From assembly GCA_035084275.1 (NCBI GenBank), contig CM068756.1:14694001-14758000 (forward strand): a stretch of 64,000 bases of DNA, given 5' to 3'. A model generated the notes under the pieces. That model had not been told where the DNA came from. It ran no database searches and worked only from the letters and a program-made list of their open reading frames with translations. Every line of letters begins with the position of its first letter. The first letter of the stretch is position 1. A program made the translations under genes and the position numbers. The stretch comes from Hydrolagus colliei (taxonomy: Eukaryota). Shown here piece by piece: positions 11,454 through 57,570 of the stretch.

Positions 11454-11529
11454 GTAACTTTATATAATTTATCTCAGCAGGTTTATCATCTTGCAAGCTG
11501 ATATTGAACGAAAACACAGAGATTGTTCT

Positions 11530-11780: not shown

Positions 11781-12264
11781 CAATACTGCTTAAGCACTGA
11801 GTGTCACACTGCGATGAACAAGTGATGTTCAGATGCCTAGTTTAAAATATTTCGAAAAGCATTTGAAAATATTTTACAATACTTATATTTCATCATATAC
11901 ACTGATAACCAATTCAATTGGTTCAATTCCTGGCACAGCAAAATTTGGGGCAAGTTTCCATATGCCGATGTCTCTGTTTACCTAGCAGTCCGTAGGATCA
12001 GTTAGCCGAATGGCGGATCGCTTTGCTCGGGATATTAATCCTTTAAAAACAATAATAAATTGGTCACTCAATCTATGATTGCTTGTAGGAAACTGCCCCA
12101 TTTTCCCACAAATATACAGTCAATTAATTCACAGTATATTCTGTGAAGTGCTTTGAGACATCTGGAAATTTGAAACGCGCAATATCAAATGCAAGGAATT
12201 TTATTATTGTGTTGAGAACAAAAGACAATGAATGAATCATGGAACTACAAGTTGTATTTTACAG

Positions 12265-12348
12265 GGAGCTGACAGTATCACATTGTATTTGACATGTTCC
12301 CAGCAATCTCAAAGACCTAAATATCAGGAAAGGACAGCACACACCCAG
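12265..12348 (+). CDS. Gene A exon 6, degenerate tyrosine-module exon (GADSITLYLTC...TAHTQ)
   Basis: ttttacag| acceptor, CAG|GTGAGA donor, 84 nt phase 0-0, open frame. Confidence 0.6.
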
Positions 12349-12858
12349 GTGAGAAATAATGAATTTAGACATGATACCTTTCAATCCCTAATCTATATTG
12401 GATTAGAAAATAGAAGGAAAATCAAGTTGTTTACCATATTATTATTTATGTACTTCACCCTCTACAAATTGTTTCATTCCTTGGTAGAGTTACACAGATC
12501 CTTCATAACTTATTAAAATAATCATTCTTAATGTGAATCTTGGACTGTGAGTACGCCAAATTATTCAAATGTATGAACATTCTAGATGAATGATGTTTGT
12601 CCTCAAAAGCACAGTTTTGGAATTTTAGCAATTGCCTACAAACTGAATTTTCTCTTCTACTTGCCTTGTGAGAATTTATACAAGCTGCTATTAACCGTAT
12701 TTGTATATGAAAATGAATGTTTAACTCATAGTTTATTTTGCAACCAACCAAGACATACAGAACGCAGTGGTGGAAATTCTGATAGCATTTATTTGGGAGA
12801 TTTCTGAAGTAAGGCAACATAGTTTAATTAATTACATTTACAAACATTTACTTTCCAG

Positions 12859-12966
12859 CCAAAGGGAGCAAACAGGAACAAGCCAACATATGCATTGATG
12901 GATTTCTCTGGCTCCAAGAAAACAGGAAAGGCTAAACCTACCAACAAGAATACAGAATACGGCGAG
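12859..12966 (+). CDS. Gene A exon 7, cytoplasmic with PTYALM and TEYGE|V motifs
   Basis: ctttccag| acceptor, GAG|GTAAGG donor, 108 nt phase 0-0. Confidence 0.8.
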
Positions 12967-13089
12967 GTAAGGGTAATAAACCTCATGAAGCTAATAGTCA
13001 AGAAATGTTACAATACTAGGTATCAAAGCTGATTATTGGTTCATCTTGAGCATACTCCCTTCCATATAGATTAGGTGTCACTTATGGGT

Positions 13090-16000: not shown

Positions 16001-19000
16001 CCACAAAAATTATGAATAGCATTATTGAAATACTGGAATAAACAAACTAAATGGTTCAGAAGGGAGTGGATTTTTCCTTTTTGGACATGTCATCCCTCCC
16101 TGCGGGTTGTTCTGTAAACACGTGAGACATTTCTTACAAAAAAAAATTTTTTTGTATAAGAAGAGAATCCAAAGGTTGTATATCTGCTGTTTACCATAGA
16201 TACCATCCCTCCTTTTGAGACATGACATTTACCATGGCTCAATTCAGCCGCTATGGGAAACAATGCTTTTGGTAATACTGGTAATTCATCCGGCCCTATC
16301 CACAACCCCTCAGCTGTTTTGGTGCATTTATAGTTTTCCCATATGCGTATCTCTGGTGATTTTGCTTCACCTTGCATTTCTCGTAATAGGGTGTGGTCTA
16401 TTTCAGGTGTCTCTTGGATTTGTAAAATTACAGTATACTGACATTCTGAATACTATCAGTTCTCGAACTTCAATTGTCTTTATTCTACCTATCGACCCTG
16501 TCACCTCACACTCTACAACACCCAATGCATACAAAACACATACGGTTGCTAATGTACACGATTGACTGGGTTGCACTTGTCCACTCATCTCCCCCTGAGA
16601 TCGTCGAGTGAAATCAGCTTTGTGGGTGGGAGAGTTGGAGCGAAAAGTATAAGTTATCCCAGAAGAAGTGGCTGCATGGAATGCCATTCTTGTCAGTATC
16701 TGTAAGAACTAAATTACAAGGTGAAATCTCCCGTTTCTTTAAACATTTTCAGTTGTTAACATGACATTATCATTAACTGCAGAAACACTTTCATTCTATG
16801 TGGAAACCAAAGAGTTACGTAAATTCATTTTGTCCACTTAAACCAGAGTGCCTGCAGTCAGTGAATTTAAACTGCTCACAGTCAATGGCTGCAGTTAATT
16901 CTAACTGCCGCAAGTTAACTGCCACAAGCTAATTTATCCATATTTAATTTCTACAAACATTTTAAGTAAATGCTGGAATACACAAAATAAATGATACATA
17001 AAATAAATCAGGCTTTTTTAAAAAAAAATCTTATATCTTCAAAGTTTACTCTACTTTATCGCTTCGTTCTTGCGCCAAATATTCCAAATTATTGGTTGTA
17101 TTTTTACTGTGCTATTACTCAGTACATATGGAACGTGGGTAGTATCTGGCTTATACTCTGCGTCTAGAGAAAAGTCAGACCTATCACGGTCCGGTACTTT
17201 TAAAATAATCCAAAATCTATGGAACATGGATGACATCTGGCCATACTCTGCGTCCAGAGCAAAGTCAGACCCACCATTGTCCTCTTTAAATGCATACATT
17301 ACATAAAACATACAACAAAAGCTTTTCTTCAATTTGCTTTCTTTTTTTTATTTTAATTAATTATTTTAATTGATTTTAATTACAAGCTAAACCATATACA
17401 GGTACAAACTTTTTTTTACACTTCTTTTACACAATAAAAAGGTAACACATTGAGCTCAAGTTTTCTTAAGGACCGTACAGTCACAACTTCCTGTGGGGAG
17501 AAACTTTCAATTAGGAGTATTGTGACTGTTCGGATTGCTCTTTTTAAAGAATAGTTAGGGAGGCACAAGTCTATCAATAATATGCAGAGTGGCCTCAAAC
17601 TCATGTTGTGACTTTTGGCCTTCCCCAAATACTCATTCAAAGGGTCGCATACCCCATAGAGATCGTAAATTCAGATAGCAATTGCTTAAAAAAAAATGTT
17701 TTTCACCTGACATTTTGTCATCACACTTTCTTTTTAATCAGAACAAATGGTGTTATTGGAACATCAAATCCAAATTGTTTTCATTTCAATTTTATGTGTT
17801 TTTACTTATTAAAAAAAAACGGATTCTCAGTCAGGTTAATTAAAAAAATATGCCTGACTTGTTTGAATTTTCGAATGTAAGTCTCTACATTTAAATTTTT
17901 TTTATCAATATACATTTGGTTTTCGACTGTCTGGTCTTTGACTTTCAATTATCTGTTGTAGCATAACATAGTTAAACATATAAAACAATTGTATTAAATA
18001 CGGTAAATATAAAATTGTTATCAATACTTATACTCTAAAATCTTATACTTTACTTTCATGTGTAGTACTTCACAAATTCTTATACTTTAAATCTTATTCT
18101 TTACAACCTTAAACTTTAATGTTCTTATTCTACTTTTAATTAAAAAAACATGTATTTCTTTTATCACCGGCTACCAACTTATTTAACCACAAAATTGACA
18201 TTTTTGCTTCTATGCTTATATAGAAATTCTTAACCTCTAAAACTTATACTGAAACACCTTATTCTTTATCTTTAATCTTATTCTTTATTTCCAAATCTTA
18301 TATTCTAAAATTTCCAATACTTATACCGTATCTTACTTAATGGCCGGCCTCTAAATAACTTATATTGTAAATATGTACATGCAGCGCACTATCGTGACGT
18401 TGTTTAGGAGTGCGACTCCCCTGTGGTTTATTAGTTCATTTTTTTTAGTCCTTTTCCACAACCTCGCTTTTTCCATAATTGTCTGTTAGCTTGCCTAGAT
18501 AGTAAACTAAGTTTTGTCTCATATTCAGGGAATAATGTGCACATGATTTGGACCGGATCCTTATAACACCCGATACAACACCCGATACAACAAGTAACAA
18601 GTCAAAAAAAATTTAAGAAAATTGCTTATGCTAGAAGAACGTCATTCATTATTCAAACAAATTAAATCATTCAAAACTACAAGCACCATTACTAAACAAC
18701 ATGAGCTACTAACGGTTCAAACCTACAACACCCCTATGAAGACATAGTGGGCAGTTTGGCGATGAGCTCCATGCGTAAGGGGTTAGTTTGTCTAGCGATT
18801 AACAAATTTCCTTGTGTTTCCGTGCTACATCCGTTCAAAACTACCAGCAGGTTAGTTTGTGTTACGGTGAGCATTGTACGTACTCCACGTTATGTATGAA
18901 CCCCAACTGGCGGCTCCAATGAGCTCGCTCCAAACATCGGTGAGTTCCAATTACACCTTGTATAATGAGCTCCAGTAACAACAATATGAGCTCCAACCCC

Positions 19001-20615
19001 ACAAAGGGTTCCATTATACCTACACAATTGTTTTTGTTAAAACACAAATTTAGATTTTTTTTAACGTCTTCCACTATATTTTCATCTCCAATGGATGTAT
19101 CTTAACGGTTCTTTTATTGGGTCTCGTCAACAGTTACTTAGGTTCAATAGTCGTGGGTCACATTTGTTGAAAAAAACACCAATGAGAAACCAAGGTTTTA
19201 CAGATATTTTATCTCACCTTGTTGGCCTGTTTCTCGGATGCTGCTCCCAACAACTGTTCGACCTCTTATTCGACTACCCGTTCCTTGATGTAACGTTTTG
19301 AGACCCTGCTCGCAGCGCCAAATGTGAAGTTGTAATTTTTTACTCGTTCCCAGAACCGTTGTCTTACAAACAGACCATACACCGTGGATAAGAAAATGTA
19401 AAGTTTATTTGCTATACCAAGAGCTGATTCTCAAAAGTCAACAGTCTCCAAGTAGAGTACCTGACAGTCAAAAGAATGAGCTGCCGGTGGTCGGTTAATG
19501 CAGCCTTTTTATACCCAAAAAGACAGGGGTTTGCAGTACACACAAAGACAGTTACAGAAGTATTACCAATCACAGGGTTCCAACAACTATTCGAATGGTG
19601 ACATCACTCAATCCATGTCTCTCTAACAAAGTGAAATGTTAAAAACAAGCTTATCTCCAGATAGTGTCTAGTTTAGACAATGTCAAGGTTTGCTGGAGTT
19701 ACTGTTTTCTGCCCCGTGAAATACTCAGATAAGGATGCGAGTGGCATTGTGCCAATCTGCATTTCCCAGGACCTGTCTTTTTCATTTTGTTAGTGGGCCA
19801 AAAGCACAGAAATTACATCTAGGCATAAAATGGCTAATTTCATATTTTGTTAGTGGGTTAAAAGTATAGAAGTTACATCTAGGTATAAATGGCTAAATTT
19901 TACAATTTCACACTTCCTTGCCAAAGCATTCAAACATATTGTTGCCAACCAACATCGCACACATCTCTCCTCCCACTCCCTTTTTGAAACCCTCCAGTCT
20001 GGTTTCCACCCTGCCTACAGTACAGAGACTGCGCTTGTGAAAGTCACAAACGATGTCCTCTCTATCTGTGATCAGGATTCCCTCTGCCTCCTTATCCACC
20101 TGGACCTGTCCACTGTGTTTGACACAGTCGACCAAGGCATCCTCCTCCACCGCCTGTCCTCCATCACCCACCTCAATGGGACCTCACTCACCTGGTTCAA
20201 GTCCTACCTCACAAACTGCCAGCAGTACATCTCCACAAAAGGGTTTTGCTCCCGCTCTCACCCGATTATCTGCGGGGTACCCCAAGGATTCATCCTTAGC
20301 CCCCCTCTCTTCCTCATCGATATGCTCTCTCTTGGGGATGTCATCCGCCGACACTTCCACATGTACGCGGATGACACCCATCCGCGTACTATTTCTCCAC
20401 CTCACTTTGTGACCCCCAGTCCCCTGATGTTCTGTCAGCCTGCCTGTCAGACATCAGGAGCAGGATGAGCATGAACTTCCTACACCTGAATGTTGACAAG
20501 ACGGAAGCCACACTCTTTGGCTCTCGTCAATGTCTCCATTCGCACGGCTCTCAACTCCTCCACCTTCCCAAACTGCTGTTAAAACTCTCTGAATCTGTGC
20601 GCAACCTAGGCATCA
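13090..20615 (+). mobile_element. L2 fragment split by the ERV (13090-14142 and 19913-20615)
   Basis: Joining across the ERV restores the RT motif PISNLSF|LAKAFKHIVANQ; HMYADDT near 20360. Confidence 0.85.
14143..19912 (-). mobile_element. Endogenous retrovirus, internally deleted, young
   Basis: Two 590-bp TG...CA LTRs (14143-14732, 19323-19912), 4-bp TSD CTTC, PBS at 19303-19320 (tRNA-Ser-like), PPT at 14733-14747, integrase HHCC remnant near 16100-16300, env CX6CC (GGVCKVIGIECC) near 14954-15004. Confidence 0.92.
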
Positions 20616-20806
20616 GGGTGGTAGAAAGTGACTTAGAGGGCCTTGATCTTTTAAAAATATATATATATATATTTTTTTTTTATCACATTTTTCATAAAAA
20701 ACTTGCATATAACTAGAGCGAAGTCTACTAATGCAAACTTATAAATAGTATAAATAGTTGGCAGAGTCGCATAAAGTAACAGTATTCTGAAACTTTGTCT
20801 TTACAG

Positions 20807-20935
20807 GTCAAACAAGGGGTAAACAAGCTGACTTACGCTGCTCTGGATTTGGGCAGCTCAACAAAAATGGGAAAGCCTAAATCTAACAAGAATACACAAT
20901 ATGCTGAGCTACATATCAAAACTACAAACGCGTAG
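20807..20935 (+). CDS. Gene A terminal exon, ITIM LTYAAL and TQYAEL, stop
   Basis: ctttacag| acceptor, 43 codons ending TAG; clear paralog of exon 7; total CDS 1149 nt = 383 codons. Confidence 0.8.
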   Translation, partial: VKQGVNKLTYAALDLGSSTKMGKPKSNKNTQYAELHIKTTNA

Positions 20936-28815: not shown

Positions 28816-29371
28816 ATGTCAAGTGTCATGTTCTACTATTTCTCTCTCATGGGGTTGCTTTCCACAGGTAGGTTTAATTTTTTTAAAATAGTTTATATTT
28901 ATAAGTGCTACCCTGAGAGAGAAGCGCTATGTAAATGAAACACGTTGTAAACAGTTTCATTGATGCGCTTTACCTCATGCTTTATATTTTCTCTGTACTC
29001 ATTTTCAAAGGCTATATATATTACTCAATGTTTGAATTTATTTCTGATAGTTGCTAAATGTGCTGTGGTGAAAGTGACTCAACTTCCCAAACACACAACT
29101 ACAACCAAAGGTGAAAGTGTGACTTTCTACTGTGCCATTGCCCATTTAGAAGGCAATTTACGTATAAAAGTGTACTGATGGAAGCTTGGGGAGAGGGAGT
29201 ACCTGCAAACAAGGCCAGATCCCAGGAAACAGTTTGGTTTTGAACAAGGAGGAAGCGGCTTCTTTCAGCTCCTGGATGTGAATGTTCAGGACTCTGGAGA
29301 TTATCATTGCGCTCTGGTGTTACAGGGGGAAATAGCAGCAAATGGAACTGGATCTACTTTAGCTGTTGATG
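28816..29371 (+). pseudogene. Gene B, SIRP-like pseudogene (leader 28816-28867, V exon 29051-29371)
   Basis: Paralog of gene A exons 1-2; the first Trp of the C-strand YWW motif is TGA at 29176-29178; no C1/TM exons follow because homology to the gene A intron stops at the hAT near 30090. Confidence 0.88.
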
Positions 29372-30092: not shown

Positions 30093-32766
30093 CAGGGCCG
30101 TACGCAGGATTTTTAATGGGGGGGTGCGAATTGCTAGTGATGGGACCAACAATGGCCGGGGGCTTGCGGGCTGCCCCCGAAGCCCCCTCGAGGCTCCGAC
30201 GTTTTACACAGTTTGAGGTCTTATTTAATCGGTTTAGAAGATCCAATATGAACGGTAAATGTTTCATGTCCTTGGTGTTTAAGAGCATCATTATTTATTC
30301 AGTGTTTTTTTTTCCCCCGGTAGTCCGTGTCTAAATCTTTTGGGAAGGTCGAATGTGTTCGCCGATAAAAGCAAACACGATTGTTGACTCGATGATGTAC
30401 GGAATGTGAACGAGAAAGTAAATTACAATCCAATTAAAACAGTACAATGACGAATGCTTGATAAATGTATGCGTATAAGAGAAAATGATCATAAACTACA
30501 GATTGACAGTAATTAATAAGTTGTTCTGCATTGTTATCCTAAGACTCAATTTCTTTCGGACTGTAATGAACAATAATGTAATAATCACTGCGGATTATAT
30601 CATGGCCAATGATTGTGATGATATGGTTCTGTATTCTAGGTGAGGTATATTTAGAATTCCTATTTGCGAGCCCAACACTAGCAAGGTGATGTCGAAGAAC
30701 CTCGTCATGCTTCGCAATCATCTGTAGGGCTGCCAAAAAGTTTCCCGGATTACGTTTGTAATGTGTGCCGTCACTCGTAACCGTGTTACTTTCCACGACT
30801 CTTTCATTATCTCCTGTAAGTGCAATGTACTGACGTCCACAGAATAATACAGCTTCGGCAACTGTTCTTATGATATGTCGATCTCTTTCAATGTTTTTCT
30901 TCTTTTCATCGACCAAACGAATGTCTATCTTATGTTGTGGGTTCGCAACAGAGTCGCGCATTGATGCCGATCTAATCATAGAATTTACGTGATAACCATT
31001 TCGTTCATGTTCCTTCGCCTTCCCGTTTAGTTTGTAAAACATGGTAAAGGGTGTATTAACAAATGCCCCCATCCGTTTCCTCTCACTTGTTTGGACCATC
31101 AGTGCACAGTGAATGCAACAAGCAGCATCTAATGAAGGACTGTAGACCATCCATTTATAATCTTGCAAGTATCTCATCTTGAACTGGCGCTGACAATGGT
31201 GAAGGAACCGTGACGGGAAAATGTAATCTTCAGATGGGATGAAGTGGCTTGTCAAGAGATGGTATTTATATGCAACATCAAGTTTTTCCAATTGCATTGG
31301 TCAACTCCTCAGGGCTCAGAGTAGCATTTATGATGTTTCCGATATCATTAACGAAATGAGTAGACCTATGTTGTATAATTATAAGGGGCTCGGCAACTTC
31401 AGCAGAATGCTGGACACTTACGCAAACCTTGACCAGGAGATTAGGTGACTCATGAGGTATATACCAGGCTTCAAAGAGCCGCCCTGAACGTTTACTGGCG
31501 ACAGCATCTGACAAATAGTGAGCTATATGGTACACTACCACACTGGTATCACAGACATTACTGCAGAGGCGTCTTAGGTTTAGCGGACATAGCTGGAGAA
31601 GCCGGGAGGAAACTGTCCATAGTCCTACTATCCTATGGGAACCATTGCACTGTCACAGAACACGAGGTAGACCGACCCTAACCTACATCGATACTCTGGA
31701 GCGCGATTGGGGTATTGGCAGGCGGGAGTTTTCAGGCTGCATGGAGAGAAGGGATCAGTGGAGAAGTGTGGTTGTCAATGTCCGAGTTCGCTCGATCGGA
31801 TGACGGTGAAACTATTTTTATGCCAAATTCGTGCGACATTGATGTTTTTTCACTCTGGGTACAAAACTGAATGTGAAATTAAGTAGCATTGTTTATCTTT
31901 GCGGTCATATTTATTTTGCATGCCAGTGGACGTCTCTAAAAGCAATTTTTATTTACAGGAATACATTGTTAATAATATAAATCAAATGTGATAATCAAGT
32001 CAAAACAAGAAACATAATATTTCAGAAACACGCCTATCAAAACTTAAATCAGTTTTACTTACATTTATCAGATTAAAATACGATTTCAGCTTCCACAAAG
32101 TGGTGCTGCCTTTTTATGTAGTGACTGTATACGGGATGATTTCCAATTGACACACCACGTAGACATAGGCGCTAAAGCATTAGGCCTACGTCCATGAGTA
32201 TCTTTTTTAAAGATAAGCATTCCCGTCCAGACACATATCGCTTTTTTGGGGGTTCACAAAAGCTTTAATTTCTCAGAAGCTTGTAAATACGTTGTCATTG
32301 TTTGCTAGCATTACAGTCACACCTCACAAAACTTGAGTCATTTTTACTTACGGTCATCAGATGAAAAGATGATTTTAGCTTCCAGAATTGGTGCTGCCCC
32401 TTGTGGCTGTTTACGGGATGATTTCCAAACGAGGATTTGAGTCTTGGCGCCTATGTTTATCCAATCACGAGTCACAGACTCGCCGCGTCATTGACTCGTC
32501 TATCGACGCGGTATGTTTTGAGTAGACGCCGATTCTGGTGTGCGACTCGATAATTTTATATTAATACTAAAACATTCAAAGATGTGTGTTTATAATTTAT
32601 ACATAGTTTTGAAGAACTGATTGTTACACAAATGCTCAATAAATTTACTTTACTTGGTATCTAAATTTGATAAAAAACTACAATTCTCTACCCCGGAAAA
32701 TGTGGACCTTTTATAATTTGGGGGGGTGCGTACGCACCCGTCGCACCCCCCCTGCGTACGGGCCTG
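30093..32766 (-). mobile_element. hAT DNA transposon (Tip100/ZMYM1/THAP12-type transposase), internally deleted
   Basis: 16-bp TIRs cagggccgtacgcagg / cctgcgtacgggcctg (1 mismatch); ORF 30539-31297 with W-x2-YS-x3-D-x3-C-x2-C zinc finger and DUF4371-like LFCGRQ..AL.G, NPGNFLA, KYTSPRIQN; no TSD. Confidence 0.85.
31457..31700 (+). mobile_element. RTE/RTE-X LINE C-terminal fragment nested in the hAT
   Basis: YTRLQRAALNVYWRQHLTNSELYG-(frameshift)-RRLRFSGHSWR...RGRPTLTYIDTL. Confidence 0.6.
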
Positions 32767-32952: not shown

Positions 32953-33013
32953 ATGAGAATGTCAGCGAGTTTTGTGTTTCAGCATGCATGTCTGTTAGGA
33001 TTGGTTTCCACAG
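32953..33013 (+). CDS. Gene C exon 1, signal peptide (MRMSASFVFQHACLLGLVST)
   Basis: Phase-1 donor G|GTGTGT; paralog at 48318. Confidence 0.78.
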
Positions 33014-33175: not shown

Positions 33176-33496
33176 TTGTTGACGGTACAATGATCAGAGT
33201 GACCCAAATCCCAGATCATATGGAGGCAATTAGAGGCACTAACGTTACCTTCCACTGCATGTTTCCTGACGCTCAATCCAACTCACGTGTAAAAGTTTAC
33301 TGGTTGAAAGAGGGAGAGAATAGCTACCTGCATACAAGGGAGGATAAAAGACAACTGTTTGAGTTTGAAAGTGAACAAAAAAGCTTCTTTAAACTCCAAA
33401 ATGTGAATCTCCAGGACTCTGGTGTGTATCATTGTGTTCTCGTGCTTCAGGGGAAAATAGCGGCCAGTGGACCTGGATCACGTCTGGATGTATGGG
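33176..33496 (+). CDS. Gene C exon 2, IgV domain
   Basis: FHC...VYWLK...DSGVYHC...SGPGSRLDVW; gatag| acceptor, G|GTAGGT donor. Confidence 0.9.
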
Positions 33497-34691: not shown

Positions 34692-35003
34692 TTCCTCCAA
34701 CTCCACTGAAAATCTTCTCCAACGTTACTAAAATAGGATCGCCAGTGCCTCTGACTCTTGTGTGTGAAACCACTGCATTTTATCCAGAGAATCTTAACCT
34801 CACTTGGTATAAAAATGGCACCAAAATTACATCTCGAATAGATATCTCTAAACAACGGAACGCAGAGGGATTGTATGAAGTTTCAAGCTTTGTGGAAGAG
34901 AATAAGCCTGTCCAAAGTGGGGTTGTTTATATCTGTCAGGTTTCTCACATCAGCCTTCAGATTCCAGAAATTGCTAACTATATAGTTCAGTTCTCCGACA
35001 CAG
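34692..35003 (+). CDS. Gene C exon 3, C1-set domain
   Basis: LVCETTAFYPENLNLTWY...YICQVSHISL; 312 nt, donor CAG|GTAGGA. Confidence 0.9.
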
Positions 35004-36475
35004 GTAGGATGCCCACAATCTTACTGTCAATTAATTTTTTCATGGTTTTTTTTAGTATCTGATTATATTTCCTGCGTGTTTACGAGTTGAAGCAAATCCC
35101 ATATTTTCTTTCTATTGTATTGGTGAGTTCGGATTTGACTGCTCATTTTCACTGATATCGGAATGAGATCTAGAGATCACTCCGTGGATGCACCCAGCCG
35201 TCCGTTTATAGTAATGATAATAATAATCATCTGTGTCCTTGGCTTTGATATAACACTTGGTAATGTTATTGATGCATCTCAAAATGCTTCACATAATGTA
35301 TATGAAATTGTATTGATTGTGTATATTGACATTAATTTCACCTAAATTGAACATTGCGACCCATGCTCATAGTTTTCCGGTAGAAAGATAGTACGAGAAG
35401 TCAGCTACAATTACAATTTTCACAGATATGCATATAAACTATACATTGCACTCTTTATGCAGAGTAGTCCATGGGACATACCACAGTTGGGGGCTTGGAA
35501 GCTGGGGCTTGATCATAGCTTCTGTCAAAGAGGGAAATGTTAAAGTGGTATTAAAATTAATTAAGAAGGGGGCCAGGCAGAGGGATTAAGGCAGGGATTT
35601 CCAAAGATTAGGACGGGAAATTCGACCAAGGATTACAGTTGTTGGACTTCCCCAGGCTTGCTCGTGACATCTGAGTAATGGGGACGACAGAGGAATGAGG
35701 TTAGAGAGGTTGGGGGCTGTTCGAGTATGAACATGAGACTGAGGGACCTGAAATCTATTCCTTTGAAGCCATGAAGGGAGTCCACGGTCATCAGCGTGCT
35801 GATTTTAACTATGTGAGGACACCAGTGATCCAGATTTGGATGAATTGGACCTTGTAAATGGTGGAACTGGGTGAGCCAGTAAGGAGTCTGTTTGCACTCA
35901 ATGGTGAGATGCAAAAGATGTGAAAAAGTTTATTAGTGGCATCTGGTGTAAGTCAAATACTAGTCGTCTTTCTCTCTTCCAAATAATTAACATTCAGCAA
36001 GCTTCCCTACTCCCCACACCTCTGTTTACCTAGCAATAGTTATTATTCGATTGGTGGTTTGCTTTTCCTGAAGTAATAAAGCCTTGAAAAAAAATCATAT
36101 GTTATTCACTCAATGCACGATTGTTTGTGGGACACTGCTGTGCTCAACTGGCTGTTGCCGGTTGCTCCCAAAATATACAGTCAATTCACTTTATGGTGCA
36201 TTCTGTGAAGCCTTGGAGATGTCTCAAAATATGATAACAACAAAATTAGATTTTGCTCCCACCTTGCTCATTGGGAGAACGTCCAGGTGCAAGTGCAAGG
36301 ATGACATTGACAATTATTATTATTATTAATAAAAACCTACCTGATATTTAATCTCCATTAGAGTTCAGTGATGTTTGCCTTGGCATGTCGTGACTTGTGT
36401 CACCCCCCAGTCTAAACCAATTTCTGTTGAACCCTACCCTGCACACTGGCTCATGGTTCTGTCTTTACTTCATAG

Positions 36476-36591
36476 TTTCTAACAGAGAACGCAATATTAT
36501 AATTTTCCGGTATGTATGCAGTGCGTTGGTAATACTTCTCTTGACTATCATCGTTGTGGACCATTTCAGAATTCATCCCATTCAAAGGTAA
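36476..36591 (+). CDS. Gene C exon 4, TM with Arg and short tail (NIIIFRYVCSALVILLLTIIVVDH...IQR*)
   Basis: ttcatag| acceptor in phase 1; hydrophobic run containing R; total CDS 810 nt = 270 codons. Confidence 0.75.
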
Positions 36592-37716
36592 AATATGTAT
36601 TGCTATTTGAGACTGCTGTTGCTTTAATATTAAATTGTTTGAGACGCAGTACAAAAAAACAGAAATATACTTGTATATCATTGTTTAAATATAACAACAT
36701 TTTTTTCATTTGATATAGAATTGTATCATGTCATTGAAACATCTCAAAGTGTTTCACTAATATATTGTATAGTAAATTGACTGTATATTTTGTGGTCAAA
36801 ATGTGGTAGTGAATTGAACTCAGCAGTGCACTACAAGCATTTGTGCATTGAGTCACCATTTTTTAAGTAGTATTACTGAAGGATATGCCAATTGACTTAC
36901 AACCAGGTTCCAACTTGCTGTGAGGCAAATAGAAGCATGTGGAGGAATAACATTTGTATAGTGCCTTTCACACCTGGAGAACATCCCAAGGCACTGAACA
37001 GTCAGTGTTTCAGACCCGAGCTGGGATCAGGATCAGGATTGGTGAGGGTGGAGTGTGGAACTTAAAGGAGGCTAGGGAGGGAGAGATGCAGAGAGATTGT
37101 GGAATGGAATTCCAGAGGTTAGGGGAGGTGAGCTAAGGCTGGTGGGATTGGTGTATCGGGGGACATGGAGCAGGCCAGAGCCTGCTCAGTGGAGGGAGTG
37201 GACAGGTTGGAAGGGGATGAGGAGGTCGCGGAAGTAAGGTGCACAGCCATGGAGGGATTTAAAGGTGACTTTAAAACTTTAAAGGAAACTTGCCCAAGGT
37301 TACTCTCCACCAAAAGTAAAATATGTTGATGTGGTGGTGGAATAAATATTTCTGTCCTACAAATTGAGGAAATTTGAAAATGAATTTCTTTATAATTGAT
37401 TTTAAATAACATGAATATGATGGTGCAACAAATTGATACTTTCACATTTGGTTGAACAACTTGTGGCAAATTATGCAAAAACCAAATTGCAAACATATTT
37501 TGCAAACAGACTTCACATAAAAGACCATTTTTACGTAAACAAAATGCATGGTGTTTGATGATGTTTTGCATTTGTAAAGTCATGAATGTAGTTTTGAAAA
37601 AAAATTCCAACATTTCAAGAGTTAAACTTAATCTGCGTCAAATCTCAAAACCGTGTATTTCTGCTTAAATACTGTGGAATAATTTCTGACAATGAGAAAA
37701 GCATGTGATATTACTA

Positions 37717-48317: not shown

Positions 48318-48378
48318 ATGAGAATGTTGGTGAGCTTTGTGTTTCTATGTGTACATTTAATCCAGATAATTTTCACAG
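48318..48378 (+). CDS. Gene D exon 1, signal peptide (MRMLVSFVFLCVHLIQIIFT)
   Basis: Phase-1 donor G|GTATGT. Confidence 0.78.
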
Positions 48379-48528
48379 GTATGTGCTCCTTCTATACCAC
48401 AATTTGTCAAAAAGTAAGATAAATGACATAATTTGATATTATTTATTGATAGAATAAGTCTCTTCGCATTGCTTTGTCTCGCGTACTAAATTCTGTTTCT
48501 AATTAGCATTTGAATTTATTTCTGATAG

Positions 48529-48846
48529 TTGTTGATGGTACAATGACCAGAGTGACCCAACTCCCCGACCATGTGGAGGCAATTAGAGGCACGAACGTTA
48601 CCTTTCAGTGCATGTTTCCTGACACTCAATCCAACCTGCGTACAAAAGTGTATTGGTGGAAGCAGGAAGACAATGTATACCATACGAAGCCGGATAAAAG
48701 AAAACTGTTTGGGTTTGACAGCAAACAAAGCAGTTTCTTTAAGCTCCTAAATGTGAGTCACCAGGATTCTGGTGTGTATCAGTGTGCCCTCATGATTGAG
48801 GGAAAATTAGTGGCCAGTGGACCTGGATCACAGCTGATTGTATGGG
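48529..48846 (+). CDS. Gene D exon 2, IgV domain (intact)
   Basis: FQC...VYWWK...DSGVYQC...SGPGSQLIVW; close paralog of the gene C V exon. Confidence 0.9.
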
Positions 48847-50695
48847 GTAGGTATGGAATATTCCAAATTAGATATAGTGCCAAAAATTGTAGAAAAGGAT
48901 AAAAGATGTTGAATTATTTTAAGAATATGAAATGGGTGTTTCAAAATGTTGTCCTTTAAAATGTATCCTCCTGGGGGGAGGTGGGATCTGCTTGGAACTG
49001 AACTAGCTCCCGGGTAACATGCTTGCAATAGAATGTCAGAAACAGGTCAACCCTGTGGGATAGCTGTGGGATTCTCTGGTTCCTGAACCAAGGCACTTCT
49101 GAGGACAGCCCAGCCAGCCTGACTGATCAGCAGGACTTGGAGAGGCAGAGGAGTCTCTAGGGGCAGGGATTGTTCTCACTCAGCTTCCGTTAACCCTGCA
49201 GGTCAAACCCATAATTCTTCTACTTGTCCACAATGGACAAACAGGGGAAAAGCTTGTGAGATAGAGCTCTCGTTGACAAGATAAGGGGTTTTAGCTGTTT
49301 AGATTCCAACAATACCCAACAAACACTCAGGGATTCCCAAGCTTTGGTTTTGCTAGCAATTGCATAATACTCTGTGGAATTACAAAATGCGGGATGGGTC
49401 AGTTTGGAAAGTCAGTGCACATTTCATTCCAATACATGGGAATTTCCACATGTGGGTGGATACATGGTTTGGTTTTGGATACTCTTCTACTGCGCGTATT
49501 AGACCACTGGTTAATCAAAACGTCTCTTTAAAAAAGAACTTTACTAAATAACTGAATGTTGTATATCTCCATATGTTTGAGAAGCACATGCTAGAGTGTT
49601 GGGCAGGAATGTCGGGGAGCTTTGCATTTCCAGAAGTGCCTTTATTTGGATACGATCAATATCCAGTCTGCAGGATGGGATTGATGTTAGAAAAATGACA
49701 CTGTTCGGAGAGACGAGTTTCTTGGTGTGCTGAAGAACATATCAATTCTATCTGTCTCCAGATAAAATTGCTCATTCAAAACACTTGTGATGTGCATTTG
49801 AGGCATTTCAAAATCACAATCAAATACAGTATAAGGATTTTAGAAAAAATTAATTAAGATTTAGACAATTTCAAGCCCATATTTTTATTCAAATCAAATT
49901 CAGTCATCAGTTAGATATACTTAGTTGAATACAATATCAGTAATTAACTATTTCTTCATCTTACTGATGAGGAAAACAATAGCGCAATAGCGCATATCAG
50001 CATTGGCTACTTTGCCGTTATCACATATATTGCTTCAAAATGTATTATCTTCTCTGGATTTTAAATCTGGAACTGTAAAACAATCAAGTTTTTCTTATTA
50101 CTCCAGTTCCATTTATGGAATAGTTTGAAAAGATAAATTTGTATTAATGGGGAGAGGCAATCGGAATTATGGAAAATAATATTTTATTTAGTGAAAATTG
50201 AGACATTCACTGACATTTTGTGCTGGCTTTTCATTGTATATTTATTTGCTTTTGGGGGAACTGTAGTGACAAAGTATCTTTCCCATAACAACTTTTATAG
50301 TTGTCGTGAATGGCGAACAAATCAAAGTTAGAACAAAATATTTAAAAATACTAATCCCTGCATTTGGCTTTTCACATCTTCTAGACATCTTAATCCACTT
50401 CACGGAATATGCTATAAAGTGAATTGACCTCATATCTGTGGACAAAACACGGCAGCCAATTGTGCACAGCAATGTCCCGCAAACAGTCATAGAATGAAAA
50501 AGATTTTGTCCAGCTTGGAATTGTTTAAATACAAAGCAAATGAATCAGAATCAAAATGCTGTATTGAACGGAATAAAATGAAAATCATAATAAAGTTTAA
50601 TCTCCACCAGTTGATTGTACGTTTTTGTAATTCTTCTGTACTGTTTGATGTGAAAGGCGCTATACAAATGTAATTTTGTTGTTGTTGTTCTATAG

Positions 50696-50996
50696 TTCCT
50701 CCAACTCCACTGAAGATCTTCTCCAAAGTTACAAAAATAGTTTCGCCTCTGGCTCTTGTGTGTGAAACCAATGCATTTTATCCAGAGGATCTTAACCTCA
50801 CTTGGTATAAAATGGCACCAAAATTACATCTGGAATAAACATCACTAAACAGCAGAATGCAGAGGGATTGTATGAAGCTTCAAGCTTTGTGGAAGAGAAC
50901 AAGACTGTCCAAAGTGAGGTTGTTTATATCTGTCAGGTTTCTCACATCAGCCTTCAGATTCCAGAAATTGTCAACTACACAGTTCAGTTCTCCAAC
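50696..50996 (+). pseudogene. Gene D decayed C1 exon
   Basis: Versus gene C: 1-bp deletion in the A run at 50809-50812 giving TAA at 50836-50838; donor segment gacacaggtaggatgcc deleted near 50994; about 40-bp L2-type tail inserted in the acceptor (50648-50690). Confidence 0.85.
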
Positions 50997-51499
50997 AATG
51001 TTATTGACAATTAATGTTAATTGTTTCTCACCCAAATATTTTATCACAATCTGATTATATTTTCTGTGTGTTTACGAGCTGAGGTAGGTCCCATATTTTA
51101 TTTCTATCATATGGTGAGTGCAGATTTGCCTGTTCATTTTCACTGTAATGTGCTGTAATTCAGAGATGACTCCATGGATGCATCCAGGCGTCCGTTTCTA
51201 ATACAATTATTCCTCGTTTAACATTGTAGTTGTGTTCTCAAGAAGTACGACATTAAGCAAACCCGTTTTTCCGATATAAATTAATGTATAAACTGGAGTT
51301 AGGTTATTTTGTACATTTTTGAAGAAAATGTTCTAAAAAAAAATTATATTTGCTCCCTGACTGCCTGCCCGGCTCACTCTCTTGCTCCCTGCCTGACCTG
51401 TTCATTTCCACCCGCTAGTGAACGACGCAATAGCGAATGTCACAACGTTAAATAGTTATATATTCCCTATGTATCAGCAACGTAATAATAAAACAATTT

Positions 51500-52220
51500 T
51501 GACCGAAGCAACAAAACAACGTTCACCAGGTTCGATCCCCAATTATCCTTCCTCCCCCGCATCCAGTCGCTCACCAGCACTGCCGTCTTCCATCTCCGAT
51601 GCATCGCCCGTCTCCACCAATATCTAACCCCAAAAGCTGCCAAAACCCTGGTCGATGCCTTTGTCACCTCTTTGCTGGACTATTCAAACATCCTCCTTGC
51701 CAGTCTCCCCTCCGTCACAATCCACAAAATCCAGCTCATACATAACTCCGTCACCTGCATTCTCACCCGTATACAACTGCTCCCCGATTACCCCTGTTCT
51801 TGCCAGACTGCACTGACTCCCTGTCCCGCAGAGGATCAATTTCAAGATCCTCACGCTTGTATTAAAATCCCTCCACTCCTCTGCACCCCCCTACCTCTCT
51901 GACCTCCTCTCCCCTCACATCAGCACCCGTTAGCTTCACTCTACCGGGTCTGGCCTCCTCCTTGTCTCCCAAATCCTCCGCTCCACCACCGGCAGCCGTA
52001 CTTTCAGCCACTACACCCAGAGGCTCTGAACTCCCTCCCTCACTCCCTTTACCTCGCCCCCTCCTTTCCTATTTTCAGGTCTCGGACCTTTCCTTTCGAC
52101 CGCATTTTTGTTCACCTTGTTCCCCTTCCCCCTTGCCCCACCCCGGGATCCTTTATTGGGAAGCGCTCTGAGATGCCATTCAGCATGGAGGGCTCTATAC
52201 AATTCCAAGTTGTTGTTTTT
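51500..52220 (+). mobile_element. L2 3' fragment
   Basis: LDYSNILLASLPSVTIHKIQLIHNS; tail aagttgttgtt. Confidence 0.75.
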
Positions 52221-52669
52221 CTTAAGCAGGGTCTACTTGTAATATTAATAACAACAACAAAATTACATTTATAAAGCGCCTTTAATATCAGGAGGATGTC
52301 CCAAGCCGCTAATTGTCAATTAATCTTTATTTTTTTCACAAGAATATTTCCTGATATTAATTACAACAAATTAGGTAATGTCCTCTTAGGCTTCCCATGC
52401 AAACATACTTATATTTTTCTATCAAATCTAGTTTTTACTATCTACTTTGCAATATATCCTGTGAAACATTGGAAGACATGCTTCCAATGTGAAAGGCATG
52501 CTATTCAATGGTTATTATTATTTACTATTATGTCTCTTTACTTGTGCATCTTCAACAACAAATTAGATTTGCATAGTGTCTTTCACAGTCATTGGTAAAT
52601 TCTGCTTACATCACTAAATGGAATACAGTACTCCTGTTTTACCTTTTCACACTTGTATTGTCATTACAG

Positions 52670-52771
52670 GAAATAATACTGATAAATTAATACAGGTATC
52701 TGGATGTGCAGGATTGACATTTCTTGTGCTTTTAGTCATTGGAATATCATGTCGATTTATGAAACGGAATG
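52670..52771 (+). CDS. Gene D TM exon, uncharged core (SGCAGLTFLVLLVIGISC-RFMKRN)
   Basis: 102 nt phase 1-1, homologous to the gene A TM exon. Confidence 0.85.
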
Positions 52772-52968
52772 GTAAGACATATTAAGGTTTTAATCAGACT
52801 TAAATTTTATTTTTACTTTAATCTAATACTTCAAAGAGTAGATTAACAGGTACCTGGTTGGCATGGCCATTGAAGTGATTTGAAGGATAAAGAATAAACC
52901 AATGCAATTTATTTTACTGCAATTTACATCGCATTTACATCGATGAGGAGAAATTTTTTATTACATCG

Positions 52969-53224
52969 CTGAGGAGAAATTTTTTCACTCAGCGAGTTGT
53001 TCGAATCTGGAATGCATTGCCTGAAAAGGTGGTGGAGGCTGATTCGATAACAACTTTTAAAAGGGAATTAGATCTTTATTTAGGGAGAACGGGTCTATTA
53101 GGCTATGGGGAGCGGGCAGGGCAGTGGGATTGAATCGCTCTTTTCAAAGAGCCGGCACAGACTAGATGGGCCGAATGGCCTCCTTTTGTGCCGTAAAATT
53201 CTATGATTCTATGATTCTATGATT
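52969..53224 (+). mobile_element. Short CR1 3' end in a gene D intron
   Basis: Near-identical to the 3' ends at 43310-43564 and 58387-58640; (ATTCTATG)n tail. Confidence 0.9.
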
Positions 53225-54281
53225 TAGAAATAGATAAGACCAAACTGGTGAATTTAATTAGATGTTTGTTTACAACAAAAGTACAGCGAATATCTCAAGT
53301 ATTGGCAGAAAAGTGCATATAGAAATTTTAGAATTTATATCAAACATGTCTTGTTTGGTGGCATTTACATTAGTGGTGAGTGTAAATATTGCAGAAATAT
53401 TCTGGCAAAATCTGACATCAAAAAATGTTTCATTTAAAAAATTTAACCAAGACAAATAAAGCAGGAAATCAGGTTGGAAATATAGACAGAAAGGGATTAT
53501 AATCAGTTCATGTCGTTTTTCAGTCTGAGAAGGAGCAAAATACACTGGTTGTTCTCATTGTCTTTTATCAATGCCTGTCATGAACACAATAAAAATAACG
53601 ACACCGACTTGCGGCCCATGTCCTCTACCATTGCAAACTCCGTGATCCCATCTCCCCCATCCTTGCCTGACTCCATTGTCTCCCCAGCATCCAGAGGATC
53701 CAATTCAAGATCCTGGTCCTCATATTTAAAGACCTCTACTACCTCGCCCCACCCTACATCCGTGACCTCCTATCCTTTTACCAACCTGCAATCCATATCC
53801 CAATCCCATAAAATCGGTCACTCAATCCACAACTGTTTGTGGGACACTGCTTTGCGCATTTGACTGCTGCTTTTCACCCACAAATGTACAGTCAAGTCAC
53901 TTTACAGTATATAATGTGAAGTGCTTTGAGATGTCTAGAAGATGTGAAAAGGCGCTATATCAAATGCAAGGATTATTATTATTATACAAAAGTGGAACTC
54001 ACAGCCTAATTTGGATATATTTTAGGTTGGTGTTTCTCCATGTGTCAGATACCAGGCTCACCAAAAACACATGATGTCTGGGTTGTTTTAAATTATTTTA
54101 CATGTAATGGTAAAGGAAGATTGATGCTGCCCTTGTCCTGCACCTTGTTTTATATTTGATAAAGTGTCCCAGAAAGCTCTTGGGCAACCAAATCACTTGC
54201 GTTTATTCACCTGTTTCCTGGGAATATAAACAACTTGAAAATTGGCTACACATTTCACTTTTTGAATTTCTTTCATTTCAG

Positions 54282-54325
54282 GATCACACAGGAAGCTGAA
54301 TGGATGTGACATTCGTACAGATCAG
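54282..54325 (+). CDS. Gene D short cytoplasmic exon (GSHRKLNGCDIRTDQ)
   Basis: 44 nt phase 1-0, homolog of 11410-11453. Confidence 0.8.
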
Positions 54326-55023
54326 GTAAAGTACAGATTTAATTCAAGAAGATGTTTCTGTGTTATGATTGAATAAGATCCTTGGTGCTATAATGACGTC
54401 CGAATATTTTGAACAGGGACTGGATATTCTTACCATTGTTAACATCGAATGCTGCATTTATTCTTTTCTATTTCTTACAATTCTTGTCCCCTTCACTGTG
54501 TCATTCATATATTCCCCCTAAGCTATCGATATGCTTAATACATGGCTCAATGTGCAATACAACACTGTTGCATAAATCTGCATAAAACGATGCAAGTGAT
54601 ATGTTAATACTGTATTTGAAATATAGCTGCTGATGTTTATTTCTATTTCAATAGCCTGAGATTTGTACATTAAACAAATATGGGACTGTATTATATGATG
54701 TTTAATGCACAGACATGAGCAGTGTGTTTAAAATGGGCCTGAAAATATTAGCTGTACTTTGAGGTACAGTAAACTACAGGTCCAAGACTCTTCCTCGACT
54801 CCTTTCAGGCCCAACTGAATGCGAGGTTTGGTGAGAGATGAATGCATACCTGTATCTGGGTCTCCAATACAGATTCATTGCATTTAGCCGGTCTCCCCGC
54901 AGATTATATAACAAGCCAAGTTTCAAGTTCCAAATTAATATTTAGATACTGCATTGCTTAACCAACAGTGGAGCCCAGTGAAGACCAGGAACCAACCAAG
55001 TAACCTCACCTTGTGTTTTACAG

Positions 55024-55110
55024 AAAGTCCATGAAACAATGTATGAGACAGTGGGATATGTCCCATCTGATTTGAAAACACATCCACAGGAATTGGTAGT
55101 AGGTGCTAAG
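55024..55110 (+). CDS. Gene D cytoplasmic exon with ITSM TMYETV
   Basis: ttttacag| acceptor, AAG|GTACAT donor, 87 nt phase 0-0. Confidence 0.65.
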
Positions 55111-55648
55111 GTACATACAATCATGATACACACCCTTTATAACTAATATGATATTCTGCTATATTACATAAAATTAAACTGATATTTATTCTTTAGAATA
55201 AAGTTGATTGTGGAATGCAACAGCTTTTCCTCCTCCTAAAATTTTTCCTCTCCTCAGACGCTTGTCTGGATTCAGTTTCTTTTGCAAATTAGTGCACAAA
55301 TAGTCCAAATAATCATTCTTCATGTGTCAGATGAGTCAGTTAGTATGGCAAAATATGTGACACTGGAGAGATCACCAATTGAATATGTCCATAGTGAGAT
55401 TAATAACCACTTCTCACTGGCCAATTAACACTGCCCACAAACTAAGAGATACCAATTCTATTTGCATTTATCACGGCATAAAAAGGAGACTGATGACTGG
55501 GATCTCTGGCTTTATAAATCTGAGTTTAGCATTGAGTGGTGCTTTACTGGATGAGAAATAGGGTGCGAAGTTTTAAATAGTTACTCGAGATTTCTAAATG
55601 CTGACAAAATGAATTAGTAACTGGAAATCTCAACCTTTATCTTTACAG

Positions 55649-55852
55649 ACCAAACAAGTAGCAGCCGGTAACATGTTGACATATACAAATTTGAACTTGT
55701 CTGGCTCCAACACAAAGGAAAAGAGAAATCCTGAATGCAGTGATAGTAAAACAGAGTATGCCCAGGTACACGTGAGAAAACACGCAGCAGCACAACAGAC
55801 CACATACAAGGAACCAACCGTAGCAGAATGCTACAACATAGGTGGAAGCTGA
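55649..55852 (+). CDS. Gene D terminal exon with ITIM LTYTNL and ITSM TEYAQV
   Basis: ctttacag| acceptor, open to TGA; motif order resembles the SIRP-alpha ITYADLNL...TEYASI pair; a possible internal donor at 55766. Confidence 0.8.
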   Translation, partial: TKQVAAGNMLTYTNLNLSGSNTKEKRNPECSDSKTEYAQVHVRKHAAAQQTTYKEPTVAECYNIGGS

Positions 55853-56749
55853 TTGCTGCATGTTGGTACCATTCTGTGATACAGATCATATCAGACCTGC
55901 TTTGTCAATCTAGCATATTTCAAACATAACTGTACATATTTGCGACTTTACCTTTTCTTCCCATCCTTACGTGGCCCCCATCCCCCAGAGGAGTTCCAGA
56001 TACTCATCTTCAATTTTAAATCGCTACACCATCTTACCCCCCTATCCCCACCACCTCTGCAACCTTCTTTAACAATAATAATCTGACCTTCCATCAGATC
56101 AGCAAGTACTGACATGCTTTATGCTCCCTGTGGCACGATCGGCAGTGGGGCTTTCAGCCTGTCTGCTTCCGCTCTCTGGAACGCCAACCAGAAGTCCATT
56201 TACCTTGTACCTTCCCTCAACTCATTCAAGACTTTGGTCAGTTTCAGTTGCTTAACCTCACACTTTCATCGGCCCCTTCTCCTCCCAAACCTTGGGACAG
56301 CTGCAAATCCTCGATAGTTCATTACCTTGGGATAATATCCCTCTGACTTGAAATATTCTACATAAATGCAACTTGTTGTTGCTGTATTTTTATAAAAGAA
56401 GTGTAAGAATATATTACTGGTTAGGCCCTATTATGCTACTTCATTGTAGGGAACGGCGATATGGGATTTTTCCGGATATGGATATATCGGTTTGCTCATA
56501 CCTGCTTAAATCGATCTATCGAGTTTTTATACTGCGCATGCGCGTGCATTCGAAGTGCGCGTGCATTGATGGCGCGCGCGCATTTATGGTGCGCGCTCAG
56601 TCGCGGTGCGCGCGCATTGACGGTGCGTCCGCACTGACGATGCGCGCGCAGTCGCGGTGCACGCACATTTCGAAATGCGTGCTCTAGGTCCAGAAAGTTT
56701 GTAATGTTGGTGTCAAGGTCTGTTGAATTATACGATGTTGTTTGCTCCC

Positions 56750-57570
56750 TACCTCCCCCTCTCCTTCTCTCGCTACCTCCTTCTCTCCCTCCTCTCCTCT
56801 TCTCTCCCTCCCTCCCCCCTCTCCTTCCCTCCCTCCCCCCTCTCCTNNNNNNNNNNNNNNNNNNNNNNNNNNNNNNNNNNNNNNNNNNNNNNNNNNNNNN
56901 NNNNNNNNNNNNNNNNNNNNNNNNNNNNNNNNNNNNNNNNNNNNNNNNNNNNNNNNNNNNNNNNNNNNNNNNNNNNNNNNNNNNNNNNNNNNNNNNNNNN
57001 NNNNNNNNNNNNNNNNNNNNNNNNNNNNNNNNNNNNNTCCTTTCCCCTCGCTCCTTCTCTCCCTCCTTTCCCCCTCTCCTTCTCTCCCTCCCTCTCCTCT
57101 CTTCCTCTCTCCTTCTCTCCCAACTTTCCCCCTCTCCCTCCCTCCCCTCTCTCCTTCTCTCCCTCCTTTCCCCTCGCTCCTTCTCTCCCTCCTTTCCCGC
57201 TCTCCTTCTCTCCCTCCCTCTCCTCTCTTCCTCTCTCCTTCTCTCCCAACTTTCCCCCTCTCCCTCCCTCCCCGCTCTCCTTCTCTCCCTCCTTTCCCCT
57301 CGCTCCTTCTCTCCCTCCTTTCCCCCTCTCCTTCTCTCCCTCCTTTCCCCCTCTCCTTCTCTCCCTCCCTCTCCTCTCTTCCTCTCTCCTTCTCTCCCAA
57401 CTTTCCCCCTCTCCTTCTCTCCCTCCCTCCCTCGCCTCTCTCCTTCTCTCCCTCCTTTCCCCTCGCTCCTTCTCTCCCTCCTTTCCCCCTCTCATTCTCT
57501 CCCTCCCTCCCCTCTCTTCCTCTCTCCTTCTCTCCCAACTTTCCCCCTCTCCTTCTCTCCCTCCATCTCT
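56750..57570. repeat. Polypyrimidine/polypurine low-complexity tract with assembly gap (N at 56847-57037)
   Basis: Almost pure C/T on the + strand with recurring roughly 120-bp higher-order units. Confidence 0.9.

Follow-up and report, generated by a model that had tools for sequence, protein, structure and literature searches.

A SIRP-like V-C1 receptor gene of Hydrolagus colliei with an arginine-bearing transmembrane exon: a candidate activating-type receptor among inhibitory-type paralogues

Again and again, pathogen decoys and the need to calibrate self against non-self have been met with pairs of activating and inhibitory receptors. To our knowledge, descriptions of such pairs are plentiful for mammals, birds and teleosts and all but absent for the cartilaginous fishes, the oldest living lineage which has immunoglobulins, TCR and MHC. 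We describe here a gene of Hydrolagus colliei, gene C, and compare it with the known systems. Mammalian SIRP are type I proteins in which a germline V(J) domain is followed by C1-set Ig domains, their ITIM-bearing and charged-transmembrane (TM) members having near-identical ectodomains and lying in one cluster: gene C and its neighbors resemble them in all these respects. However, SIRP are built as V, C1, C1 while gene C has one C1 and not two, and activating SIRP-beta1 has a central Lys and uses DAP12 while gene C has an Arg at TM position 5-6. With one C1, and Arg rather than Lys, we call gene C SIRP-like and not SIRP. The Arg in the N-terminal third of the TM segment is found again in Fc-alpha-RI, NKp46, GPVI, LILRA/PIR-A and chicken CHIR-A. 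In Fc-alpha-RI, NKp46, GPVI and LILRA2, an acidic residue appears to stand 17 positions past this Arg, and in such LRC-type Arg receptors it would often be closely followed by His, which is the spacing R-x16-D-H encountered below. The ectodomains of LRC-type receptors are nevertheless C2/I-set where that of gene C is V(J)-C1, and TM homology is undetectable beyond the pattern.

TCR alpha has the same V-C1-TM-stub architecture as gene C, with an Arg at about TM position 5 which binds the zeta-zeta dimer, CD3zeta being present in the TCR complex of every jawed vertebrate. Unlike TCR alpha, gene C has neither rearrangement, nor a second basic TM residue, nor the conserved stalk cysteine, and it belongs to a paired family with ITIM and charged-TM members. 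An unpaired TM Arg normally leads to retention in the ER: this is the rationale of adaptor-dependent receptors. Hagfish APAR, teleost NITR and skate MDIR are germline V-domain receptors occurring in ITIM and charged-TM forms; unlike gene C, they have other domain compositions and are not known to have a membrane-adjacent C1. Finally, UrIg and UrIg2 of elasmobranchs (PMC12227049) are, like gene C, genes of cartilaginous fish with a split leader and a non-rearranging VJ exon followed by a C1. We considered gene C as a member of the UrIg/UrIg2 family and ruled this out because of their multi-C-domain architecture (9-11 C domains in UrIg2, several in UrIg; PMC12227049); activating/inhibitory pairing and the R-x16-DH cassette are not described for them.

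The window (we call so the whole stretch of 64,000 nucleotides analysed, positions 14,694,001 to 14,758,000 of contig CM068756.1) contains four paralogous Ig-superfamily units on the + strand, genes A, B, C and D, found by self-tblastn and by tblastn with homologues (Table 1). The leader, V and C1 exons of gene C each keep one base before their GT, every junction being of phase 1, and the TM exon, preceded by a pyrimidine-rich tcatAG acceptor, opens with the two other bases of a split codon. Hence the four exons join into one open reading frame (ORF) of 267 residues, in which a signal peptide precedes a V-set and a C1-set domain and one hydrophobic segment; all four are open and have consensus splice sites. 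The V exon ends with a J-like motif, SGPGSRLDVW (type G-x-G-x-x-L-x-V). Between 35.0 and 36.4 kb, tblastn revealed no second C1-like exon, which leaves gene C with a single C1. A hydrophobic ORF at 35205, between the C1 and TM exons, was tried as an exon and rejected: it is a dispersed repeat with copies at 745 and 1670.

Table 1. Features of the four Ig-superfamily units in the window.
Feature	Positions	Strand	Details
Gene A, inhibitory-type paralogue, apparently intact	8301-20935	+	leader 8301-8352; V 8580-8897; C1 10389-10700
Gene A, distal exons	11045-11146; 11410-11453, 12859-12966; 20807-20935	+	uncharged TM; cytoplasmic (two exons); probable terminal
Gene B, lone V exon	29050-29370	+	81% to gene A V; conserved Trp codon is TGA, 29176-29178
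Gene C, leader exon	32953-33013	+	MRMSASFVFQHACLLGLVST plus 1 base; donor G/GTGTGT; collinear with gene D leader 48318-48378
Gene C, V(J)-type Ig exon	33176-33496	+	phase 1 at both ends; Pfam V-set E=1e-9
Gene C, C1-set Ig exon	34692-35003	+	Pfam C1-set E=4.2e-14
Gene C, connecting-peptide/TM/short-tail exon	36476-36591	+	exon 4 of 4; HMM E=4e-11
ATTAAA hexamer	36629-36634	+	38 nt past the gene C stop; possible poly(A) signal, should the donor be unused; weak, in AT-rich DNA
Gene D, inhibitory-type paralogue	48318-55765	+	leader 48318-48378; V 48529-48846; C1 50696-~51000
Gene D, distal exons	52670-52771; 55649-55765	+	uncharged TM (...SGCAGLTFLVLLVIGISCRFMKRN); ITIM exon (LTYTNL, TEYAQ)

The best full-length database match of gene C is XP_007902896 of the chimaera Callorhinchus milii (P0001, 266 aa, 98% coverage), which ends with ...AISRFTLSMLLILFLAIIIVDHFRKNPL. 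All the relatives found by protein search are V-C1 proteins of cartilaginous fishes, those of C. milii being the closest, with 57-85% identity; the first ones outside chondrichthyans are SIRP-annotated proteins of coelacanth and pig. Against PDB sequences, the ectodomain matched SIRP-gamma (4.7e-18), SIRP-alpha (9.5e-17) and, in third place, UrIg2 (5.7e-13), followed by TCR-beta chains, B7-H6 and CD276, while Foldseek against PDB with the model of gene C returned generic V-C1 chains, mostly antibody light chains, and so bore out the architecture but did not discriminate between families. The public names of the family members are automatic and inconsistent: SIRP-like, tapasin-related-like, MHC class II beta-like, Ig lambda-like, NCR3LG1-like. 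Our literature search found no description of this chondrichthyan V(J)-C1 family or of its charged-TM members. Judging by these comparisons, gene C is a member of a SIRP-like V(J)-C1 multigene family spanning the cartilaginous fishes. Paired Ig receptors with a TM Arg are already thoroughly known as a kind, of which gene C is a further member.

In frame +3, the TM exon of gene C (36476-36591) reads (V)SNRERNIIIFRYVCSALVILLLTIIVVDHFRIHPIQR and then TAA at 36589-36591, so that the peptide of exon 4 is ...NIIIFRYVCSALVILLLTIIVVDHFRIHPIQR followed by the stop. An earlier note on this DNA, made from the letters alone, had claimed that this exon bears an Arg: the Arg codon is indeed there (CGG, 36508-36510), with the Asp-His codons at 36559-36564. 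We built a TM-tail HMM from nine chondrichthyan tails of seven species, leaving the window sequence out of the profile, and ran it against the 1604 six-frame ORFs of the window. It matched only +36394-36588 (E=4e-11; the runner-up had 0.34). In a tblastn search against the window, P0001 of C. milii aligned to 36475-36582 (E=1.5e-4). These matches to foreign tails mean that 36476-36591 is not a hydrophobic ORF arisen by chance: the TM exon of gene C is a real exon, and the sole one of its type in the window. A word-based protein search with residues 222-267 of gene C alone gave no match, the segment being short and degenerate for this method, and PDB searches with the TM peptide and with the TM-tail profile gave chance matches only (serpin peptides, SecE, C5aR).

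We compared the tail of gene C with nine others. In all ten, the most hydrophobic segment of 21 residues starts 4-5 residues before the Arg, which places the Arg at position 5-6, and the Asp of the cassette lies just beyond the cytoplasmic end of this segment. The 16 apolar residues between Arg and Asp are too short for a bilayer, hence the segment which bears the Arg is needed to span it. An AF2 model from an alignment of 38 sequences (mean pLDDT 88.5) has a single continuous helix over 229-262, containing R241 and D258. The topology prediction called for in the earlier note thus puts the Arg inside the membrane and not outside, as far as prediction goes, and both hydropathy and the modelled helix agree with its claim that the Arg lies within the TM segment near the extracellular side. 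The Arg may snorkel to the outer headgroup region.

The motif R-x16-[D/E]-H is common to the ten tails with identical spacing, apart from a Gln in place of the Arg in one of them. R-x16-[DE]H is present in C. milii, Heterodontus, Heptranchias (two genes), Scyliorhinus, Carcharodon, Chiloscyllium punctatum and C. plagiosum. The presence of the cassette in chimaera and in six shark species means that it is older than the split between holocephalans and elasmobranchs. In the alignment of the ten tails, the His is invariant, and conservation reaches 90% or more at the Arg, at the Asp and at three aliphatic positions; past Asp/Glu-His, one usually finds a hydrophobic residue and then Lys or Arg. 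The Arg is kept in nine tails out of ten, the exception being a paralogue of Heptranchias perlo (P0036, XP_067853650). In this natural charge-loss variant the rest of the cassette is intact (16 apolar residues, Asp-His) despite the Gln, from which it follows that the cassette may have a role independent of the charge.

This leads to a first alternative: gene C could be a non-signalling or decoy receptor, like SIRP-gamma, with a snorkelling Arg, where R...DH would serve positioning, trafficking or retention, or a partner without ITAM. The Gln of P0036 speaks for it, as does the fact that the His and Asp of the inner boundary are conserved as well as the Arg, and the residues before the Arg are weakly hydrophobic in some orthologues (SLTH in Carcharodon, VFP in Heterodontus). 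On the other hand, the Arg is retained in nine tails out of ten, in seven species and across the chimaera-shark split, with a fixed spacing; 16 apolar residues deprived of the segment holding the Arg cannot span a bilayer; and an unpaired TM Arg normally entails retention in the ER. We consider a decoy unlikely.

Most members of the family have an uncharged TM segment and tails with ITIM/ITSM, and a minority, gene C among them, carries the R-x16-[D/E]-H cassette (R-type tails). In the tree of ectodomains, R-type tails fall on at least four separate clades, each beside ITIM-type members; P0032 and P0087 are ITIM-type, and the polyphyly of R-type tails does not rest on either. In Heptranchias, the C1 domains of P0081 (R-type) and P0112 (ITIM-type) are nearly identical. 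Genes C and D have about 72% (V) and 85% (C1) identity to P0061 and P0038 of C. milii, which are inhibitory-type (the TM segment of P0038 is uncharged, of the type of gene D), against only 60-64% to the R-type P0001 of the same species. The ectodomain of gene C, nearer to P0061/P0038 than to P0001, is therefore of the inhibitory lineage and was re-paired with an old R-type cassette. Repeated re-pairing of a single TM module is typical of paired receptors. One could go further and see in R-x16-[D/E]-H an ancient mobile activating module, which predates the chimaera-shark split and was repeatedly grafted onto ectodomains of the inhibitory lineage; we put this forward tentatively, as a rather doubtful extension.

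According to the earlier note, the ectodomain of gene C is closest to that of gene D. This was borne out: amino-acid identity between the two is 78% overall (69% in V and 86% in C1), and the tree joins them as sisters with a support of 99. Their DNA is collinear at 70-83% of nucleotides, introns included, starting ahead of the leader exon, from 32765 against 48121 through 35213 against 51203. The homology ends about 200 bp past the C1 exon, beyond which only dispersed repeats are common to both. The C1 exon of gene D (50696-51003), when compared to gene C, has a 6-nt in-frame deletion and a 1-nt deletion in a run of five A (A4 at 50809-50812) which shifts the frame, and its donor has changed from GT to TT at 51001, while the V, TM and ITIM exons are open. 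Gene D is broken in this assembly and may be a pseudogene. The deletion in the A run could be an assembly error; the change of the donor is less likely to be one. The junctions on either side of this C1 exon are of phase 1, so that skipping it would leave an in-frame, V-only inhibitory product. The classic paired-receptor pattern that had been read into C and D therefore stands as regards the near-identical ectodomain, the uncharged TM and the LTYTNL motif of D, but is less secure as regards an intact inhibitory partner, the C1 of D being frameshifted and its donor lost in this assembly.

Gene A, with 55-57% identity to gene C, has a probable last exon which encodes VKQGVNKLTYAALDLGSSTKMGKPKSNKNTQYAELHIKTTNA up to the stop and lies 8 kb past the last clear exon of the gene. 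Joined in phase 0 to 12859-12966, it gives TEYGEV (an ITSM completed across the junction, TEYGE/V), LTYAAL and TQYAEL. By this join, which we infer, the exon probably belongs to gene A; otherwise it would be a relic of a lost gene. On its sequence, gene A is thus an apparently intact ITIM/ITSM partner within the window. Gene B is a pseudogene fragment, as follows from the TGA at its conserved Trp codon and from the fact that no C1 or TM exon comes after its V exon. Just downstream, on the - strand (30539-31297), lies an ORF of 252 aa with a weak match to DUF4371 (E=0.008); it is possibly derived from a transposase and may mark the disruption of gene B. In Heptranchias perlo, locus L002 has at 2162-4278 a V + C1 unit of the family, upstream of the R-type P0019, with in-frame stops and a break of the C1 frame. 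Damaged copies thus lie beside R-type genes in sharks too, which fits a rapid birth-and-death of these clusters.

We come now to the possible partner of the Arg. The work of Feng, Call and Wucherpfennig (PMC1440944) shows that assembly depends almost only on a well-placed basic TM residue and on the Asp pair of the adaptor: in every Fc-gamma partner, it is the N-terminal TM segment which bears the Arg (at position 3 for Fc-alpha-RI, with the Fc-gamma Asp at position 6), and the type I partners of DAP12 carry a central Lys, near position 9. The latter rule agrees with what the earlier note had said of mammalian SIRP-beta, namely that it uses a Lys with DAP12. Under the same rule, position 5-6 for the Arg speaks for the zeta/gamma class and against DAP12. 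We therefore weighed a second alternative, in which gene C would be activating and coupled to an adaptor of DAP12 or DAP10 type, like mammalian SIRP-beta. This would suit its SIRP-like ectodomain (the matches to SIRP-gamma and SIRP-alpha given above, and nearest non-chondrichthyan relatives annotated as SIRP), and rodent DAP12 does accept the TM Arg of Ly49 (PMC1440944). Ly49 is, however, a type II protein; gene C has Arg and not Lys, at position 5-6 and not about 9; Fc-alpha-RI, with its Arg at position 3, failed to assemble with DAP12, and KIR in which K was changed to R assembled with DAP12 at only 15% (PMC1440944). We see little chance that gene C couples in this way.

The likeness of gene C to receptors coupled to FcRgamma or CD3zeta, proposed in the earlier note, needs a correction in its FcRgamma half. 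The N-terminal Arg rule (PMC1440944) upholds it, whereas Akula et al. (2014; PMC4016189) looked for FcRgamma homologues and reported none from shark genomes or from lamprey. This reported absence is also a point in favor of the decoy mentioned above. In our search with human FcRgamma, only tetrapods appeared among the 120 matches listed; the method is word-based and requires shared 5-mers, so that this is uninformative for cartilaginous fish. With FcRgamma reported absent from sharks, it is easier to defend CD3zeta, or a relative yet to be discovered, and we regard a zeta-family dimer as the most defensible partner for gene C.

Taken together, we think that gene C is probably a charged-TM activating-type receptor, a type I protein of about 267 aa, coupling to an ITAM adaptor of the zeta/gamma family. 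The analysis shows the structure of the gene, the conservation of the motif, the place of the Arg in the membrane (by hydropathy and a model) and a genomic layout of paired receptors, while adaptor binding, adaptor identity, activating output and the exact C-terminus are what we only infer. From the N-terminus, the receptor has a signal peptide, then a non-rearranging V(J) domain, one C1, a short stalk, a TM helix and a stub of at most about 10 encoded residues. Its Arg is predicted to sit one to two turns inside the outer leaflet and would pair with an ITAM adaptor of the CD3zeta/FcRgamma family, a disulfide-linked dimer, through the two TM aspartates of the latter; a ligand bound to an ectodomain nearly identical to that of the inhibitory neighbor would then activate the cell instead of inhibiting it. 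This adaptor model offers no explanation for the two conserved residues of the inner boundary, the invariant His and the near-invariant Asp.

The C-terminus of gene C can be read in two ways. Past the hydrophobic stretch, the tail reads DHFRIHPIQR, without Tyr, and a short Tyr-free tail is the likely reading. The stop codon TAA (36589-36591), however, overlaps a good donor, CAAAG/GTAAAA (GT at 36588-36589, AG/GT at 36587/36588). We compared the window with the shark loci L001-L006 (the loci of C. milii P0001 and Scyliorhinus P0047 were not included) and found this donor conserved in seven loci out of seven, gene C and the six sharks: the orthologous exons of L001-L006 all end with (A/G)AG/GTAAG, 2-10 codons past Asp-His, and the AGG-TAA overlap occurs likewise in Heterodontus and in C. 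punctatum. The NCBI models of all six shark loci splice on to a further exon, which adds 4-47 residues. The conserved donor argues that the TM exon is usually internal; and since the stop overlaps it, a tail ending at QR is only one of two readings. The shark additions are mutually unrelated, even between the two Heptranchias paralogues, and without a shared motif, and this lack of conservation argues that they are not a functional tail. The earlier claim of a Tyr-free tail is thus correct for DHFRIHPIQR, and less secure for the finished protein, to which the conserved donor could add a few residues from a 3' exon.

A last alternative must be examined here: either gene C does not work (an unexpressed duplicate), or its product differs through splicing from 36587 to an exon which changes the tail. 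The donor over the stop, the use of downstream exons in six shark models out of six and the damage to the neighbors B and D, a sign that the cluster is turning over, all lean this way. Yet the four exons of gene C are all open with consensus splice sites; the shark 3' exons, unrelated even between Heptranchias paralogues, have no common motif; and from 36.6 to 47.3 kb an ITIM-type exon was looked for by tblastn with 23 family proteins and not found. The + strand of the whole window holds 15 ITAM-like strings, no more than expected by chance. We consequently hold this alternative to be very improbable. We also tried YHCLNITTFFSFDIELYHVI (36676), whose phase agrees with that of a cag acceptor at 36660-36662, as an ITAM-like extension and rejected it, because the acceptor comes after a poly-A tract and the intron would be of 75 nt; as an ITAM, it was rejected because of a Tyr spacing of 12 and because the + strand has 15 such strings by chance.

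The window offers a clean genomic case, with an intact R-type gene adjoining ITIM-type paralogues and a sharp breakpoint of homology, and the comparison between species shows the great age of the charged TM cassette and the strictness of its spacing. What gives gene C additional interest is the age of the cassette, its strict spacing, and the question of the adaptor in a lineage reported to lack FcRgamma. The question of which ITAM adaptors were used by germline V-C1 receptors at the root of jawed vertebrates can now be put to the bench (R241, D258, H259), and with it that of whether FcRgamma, or CD3zeta alone, exists in cartilaginous fishes. If, on the doubtful extension given above, the cassette is homologous or functionally equivalent to that of the FcRgamma-coupled LRC receptors of tetrapods, zeta/gamma-type coupling of germline V(J)-C1 receptors predates bony fish, and did so in a lineage from which FcRgamma is reported missing. 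The partner would then be CD3zeta or an undiscovered relative of it, and an innate receptor shaped like a TCR (V-C1-TM) would be tied to the signalling dimer of the TCR.

Finally we must note some features of the surrounding DNA, which is AT-rich vertebrate DNA with much LINE and SINE debris. Two identical arrays of 60-bp tandem repeats (14472-14716 and 19652-19896), with identical flanking ORF strings, lie 5180 bp apart within gene A, in its long last intron; they point either to a segmental duplication of recent date or to a transposable element present in two copies. The block 2000-7000 is GC-rich (about 54% GC at 2-6 kb), with a GC skew down to -0.5, and contains proline-rich repeats of 27/33/60 bp (2808-2945) as well as an array of nine 21-bp units (6289-6480). 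It also holds two successive copies of an apparent LINE 5' part, with one ORF reading ENIDIMALTETWI..., which we take to be an endonuclease-type start. We read this block as a decayed, internally duplicated retrotransposon and not as a host gene. At 56538-57564, an assembly gap (N run 56847-57037) has at its flanks GC-rich 34/51-bp repeats and a long CT-rich 25/126/151-bp array (TCCCTC-like), and this repeat DNA is probably the cause of the gap.
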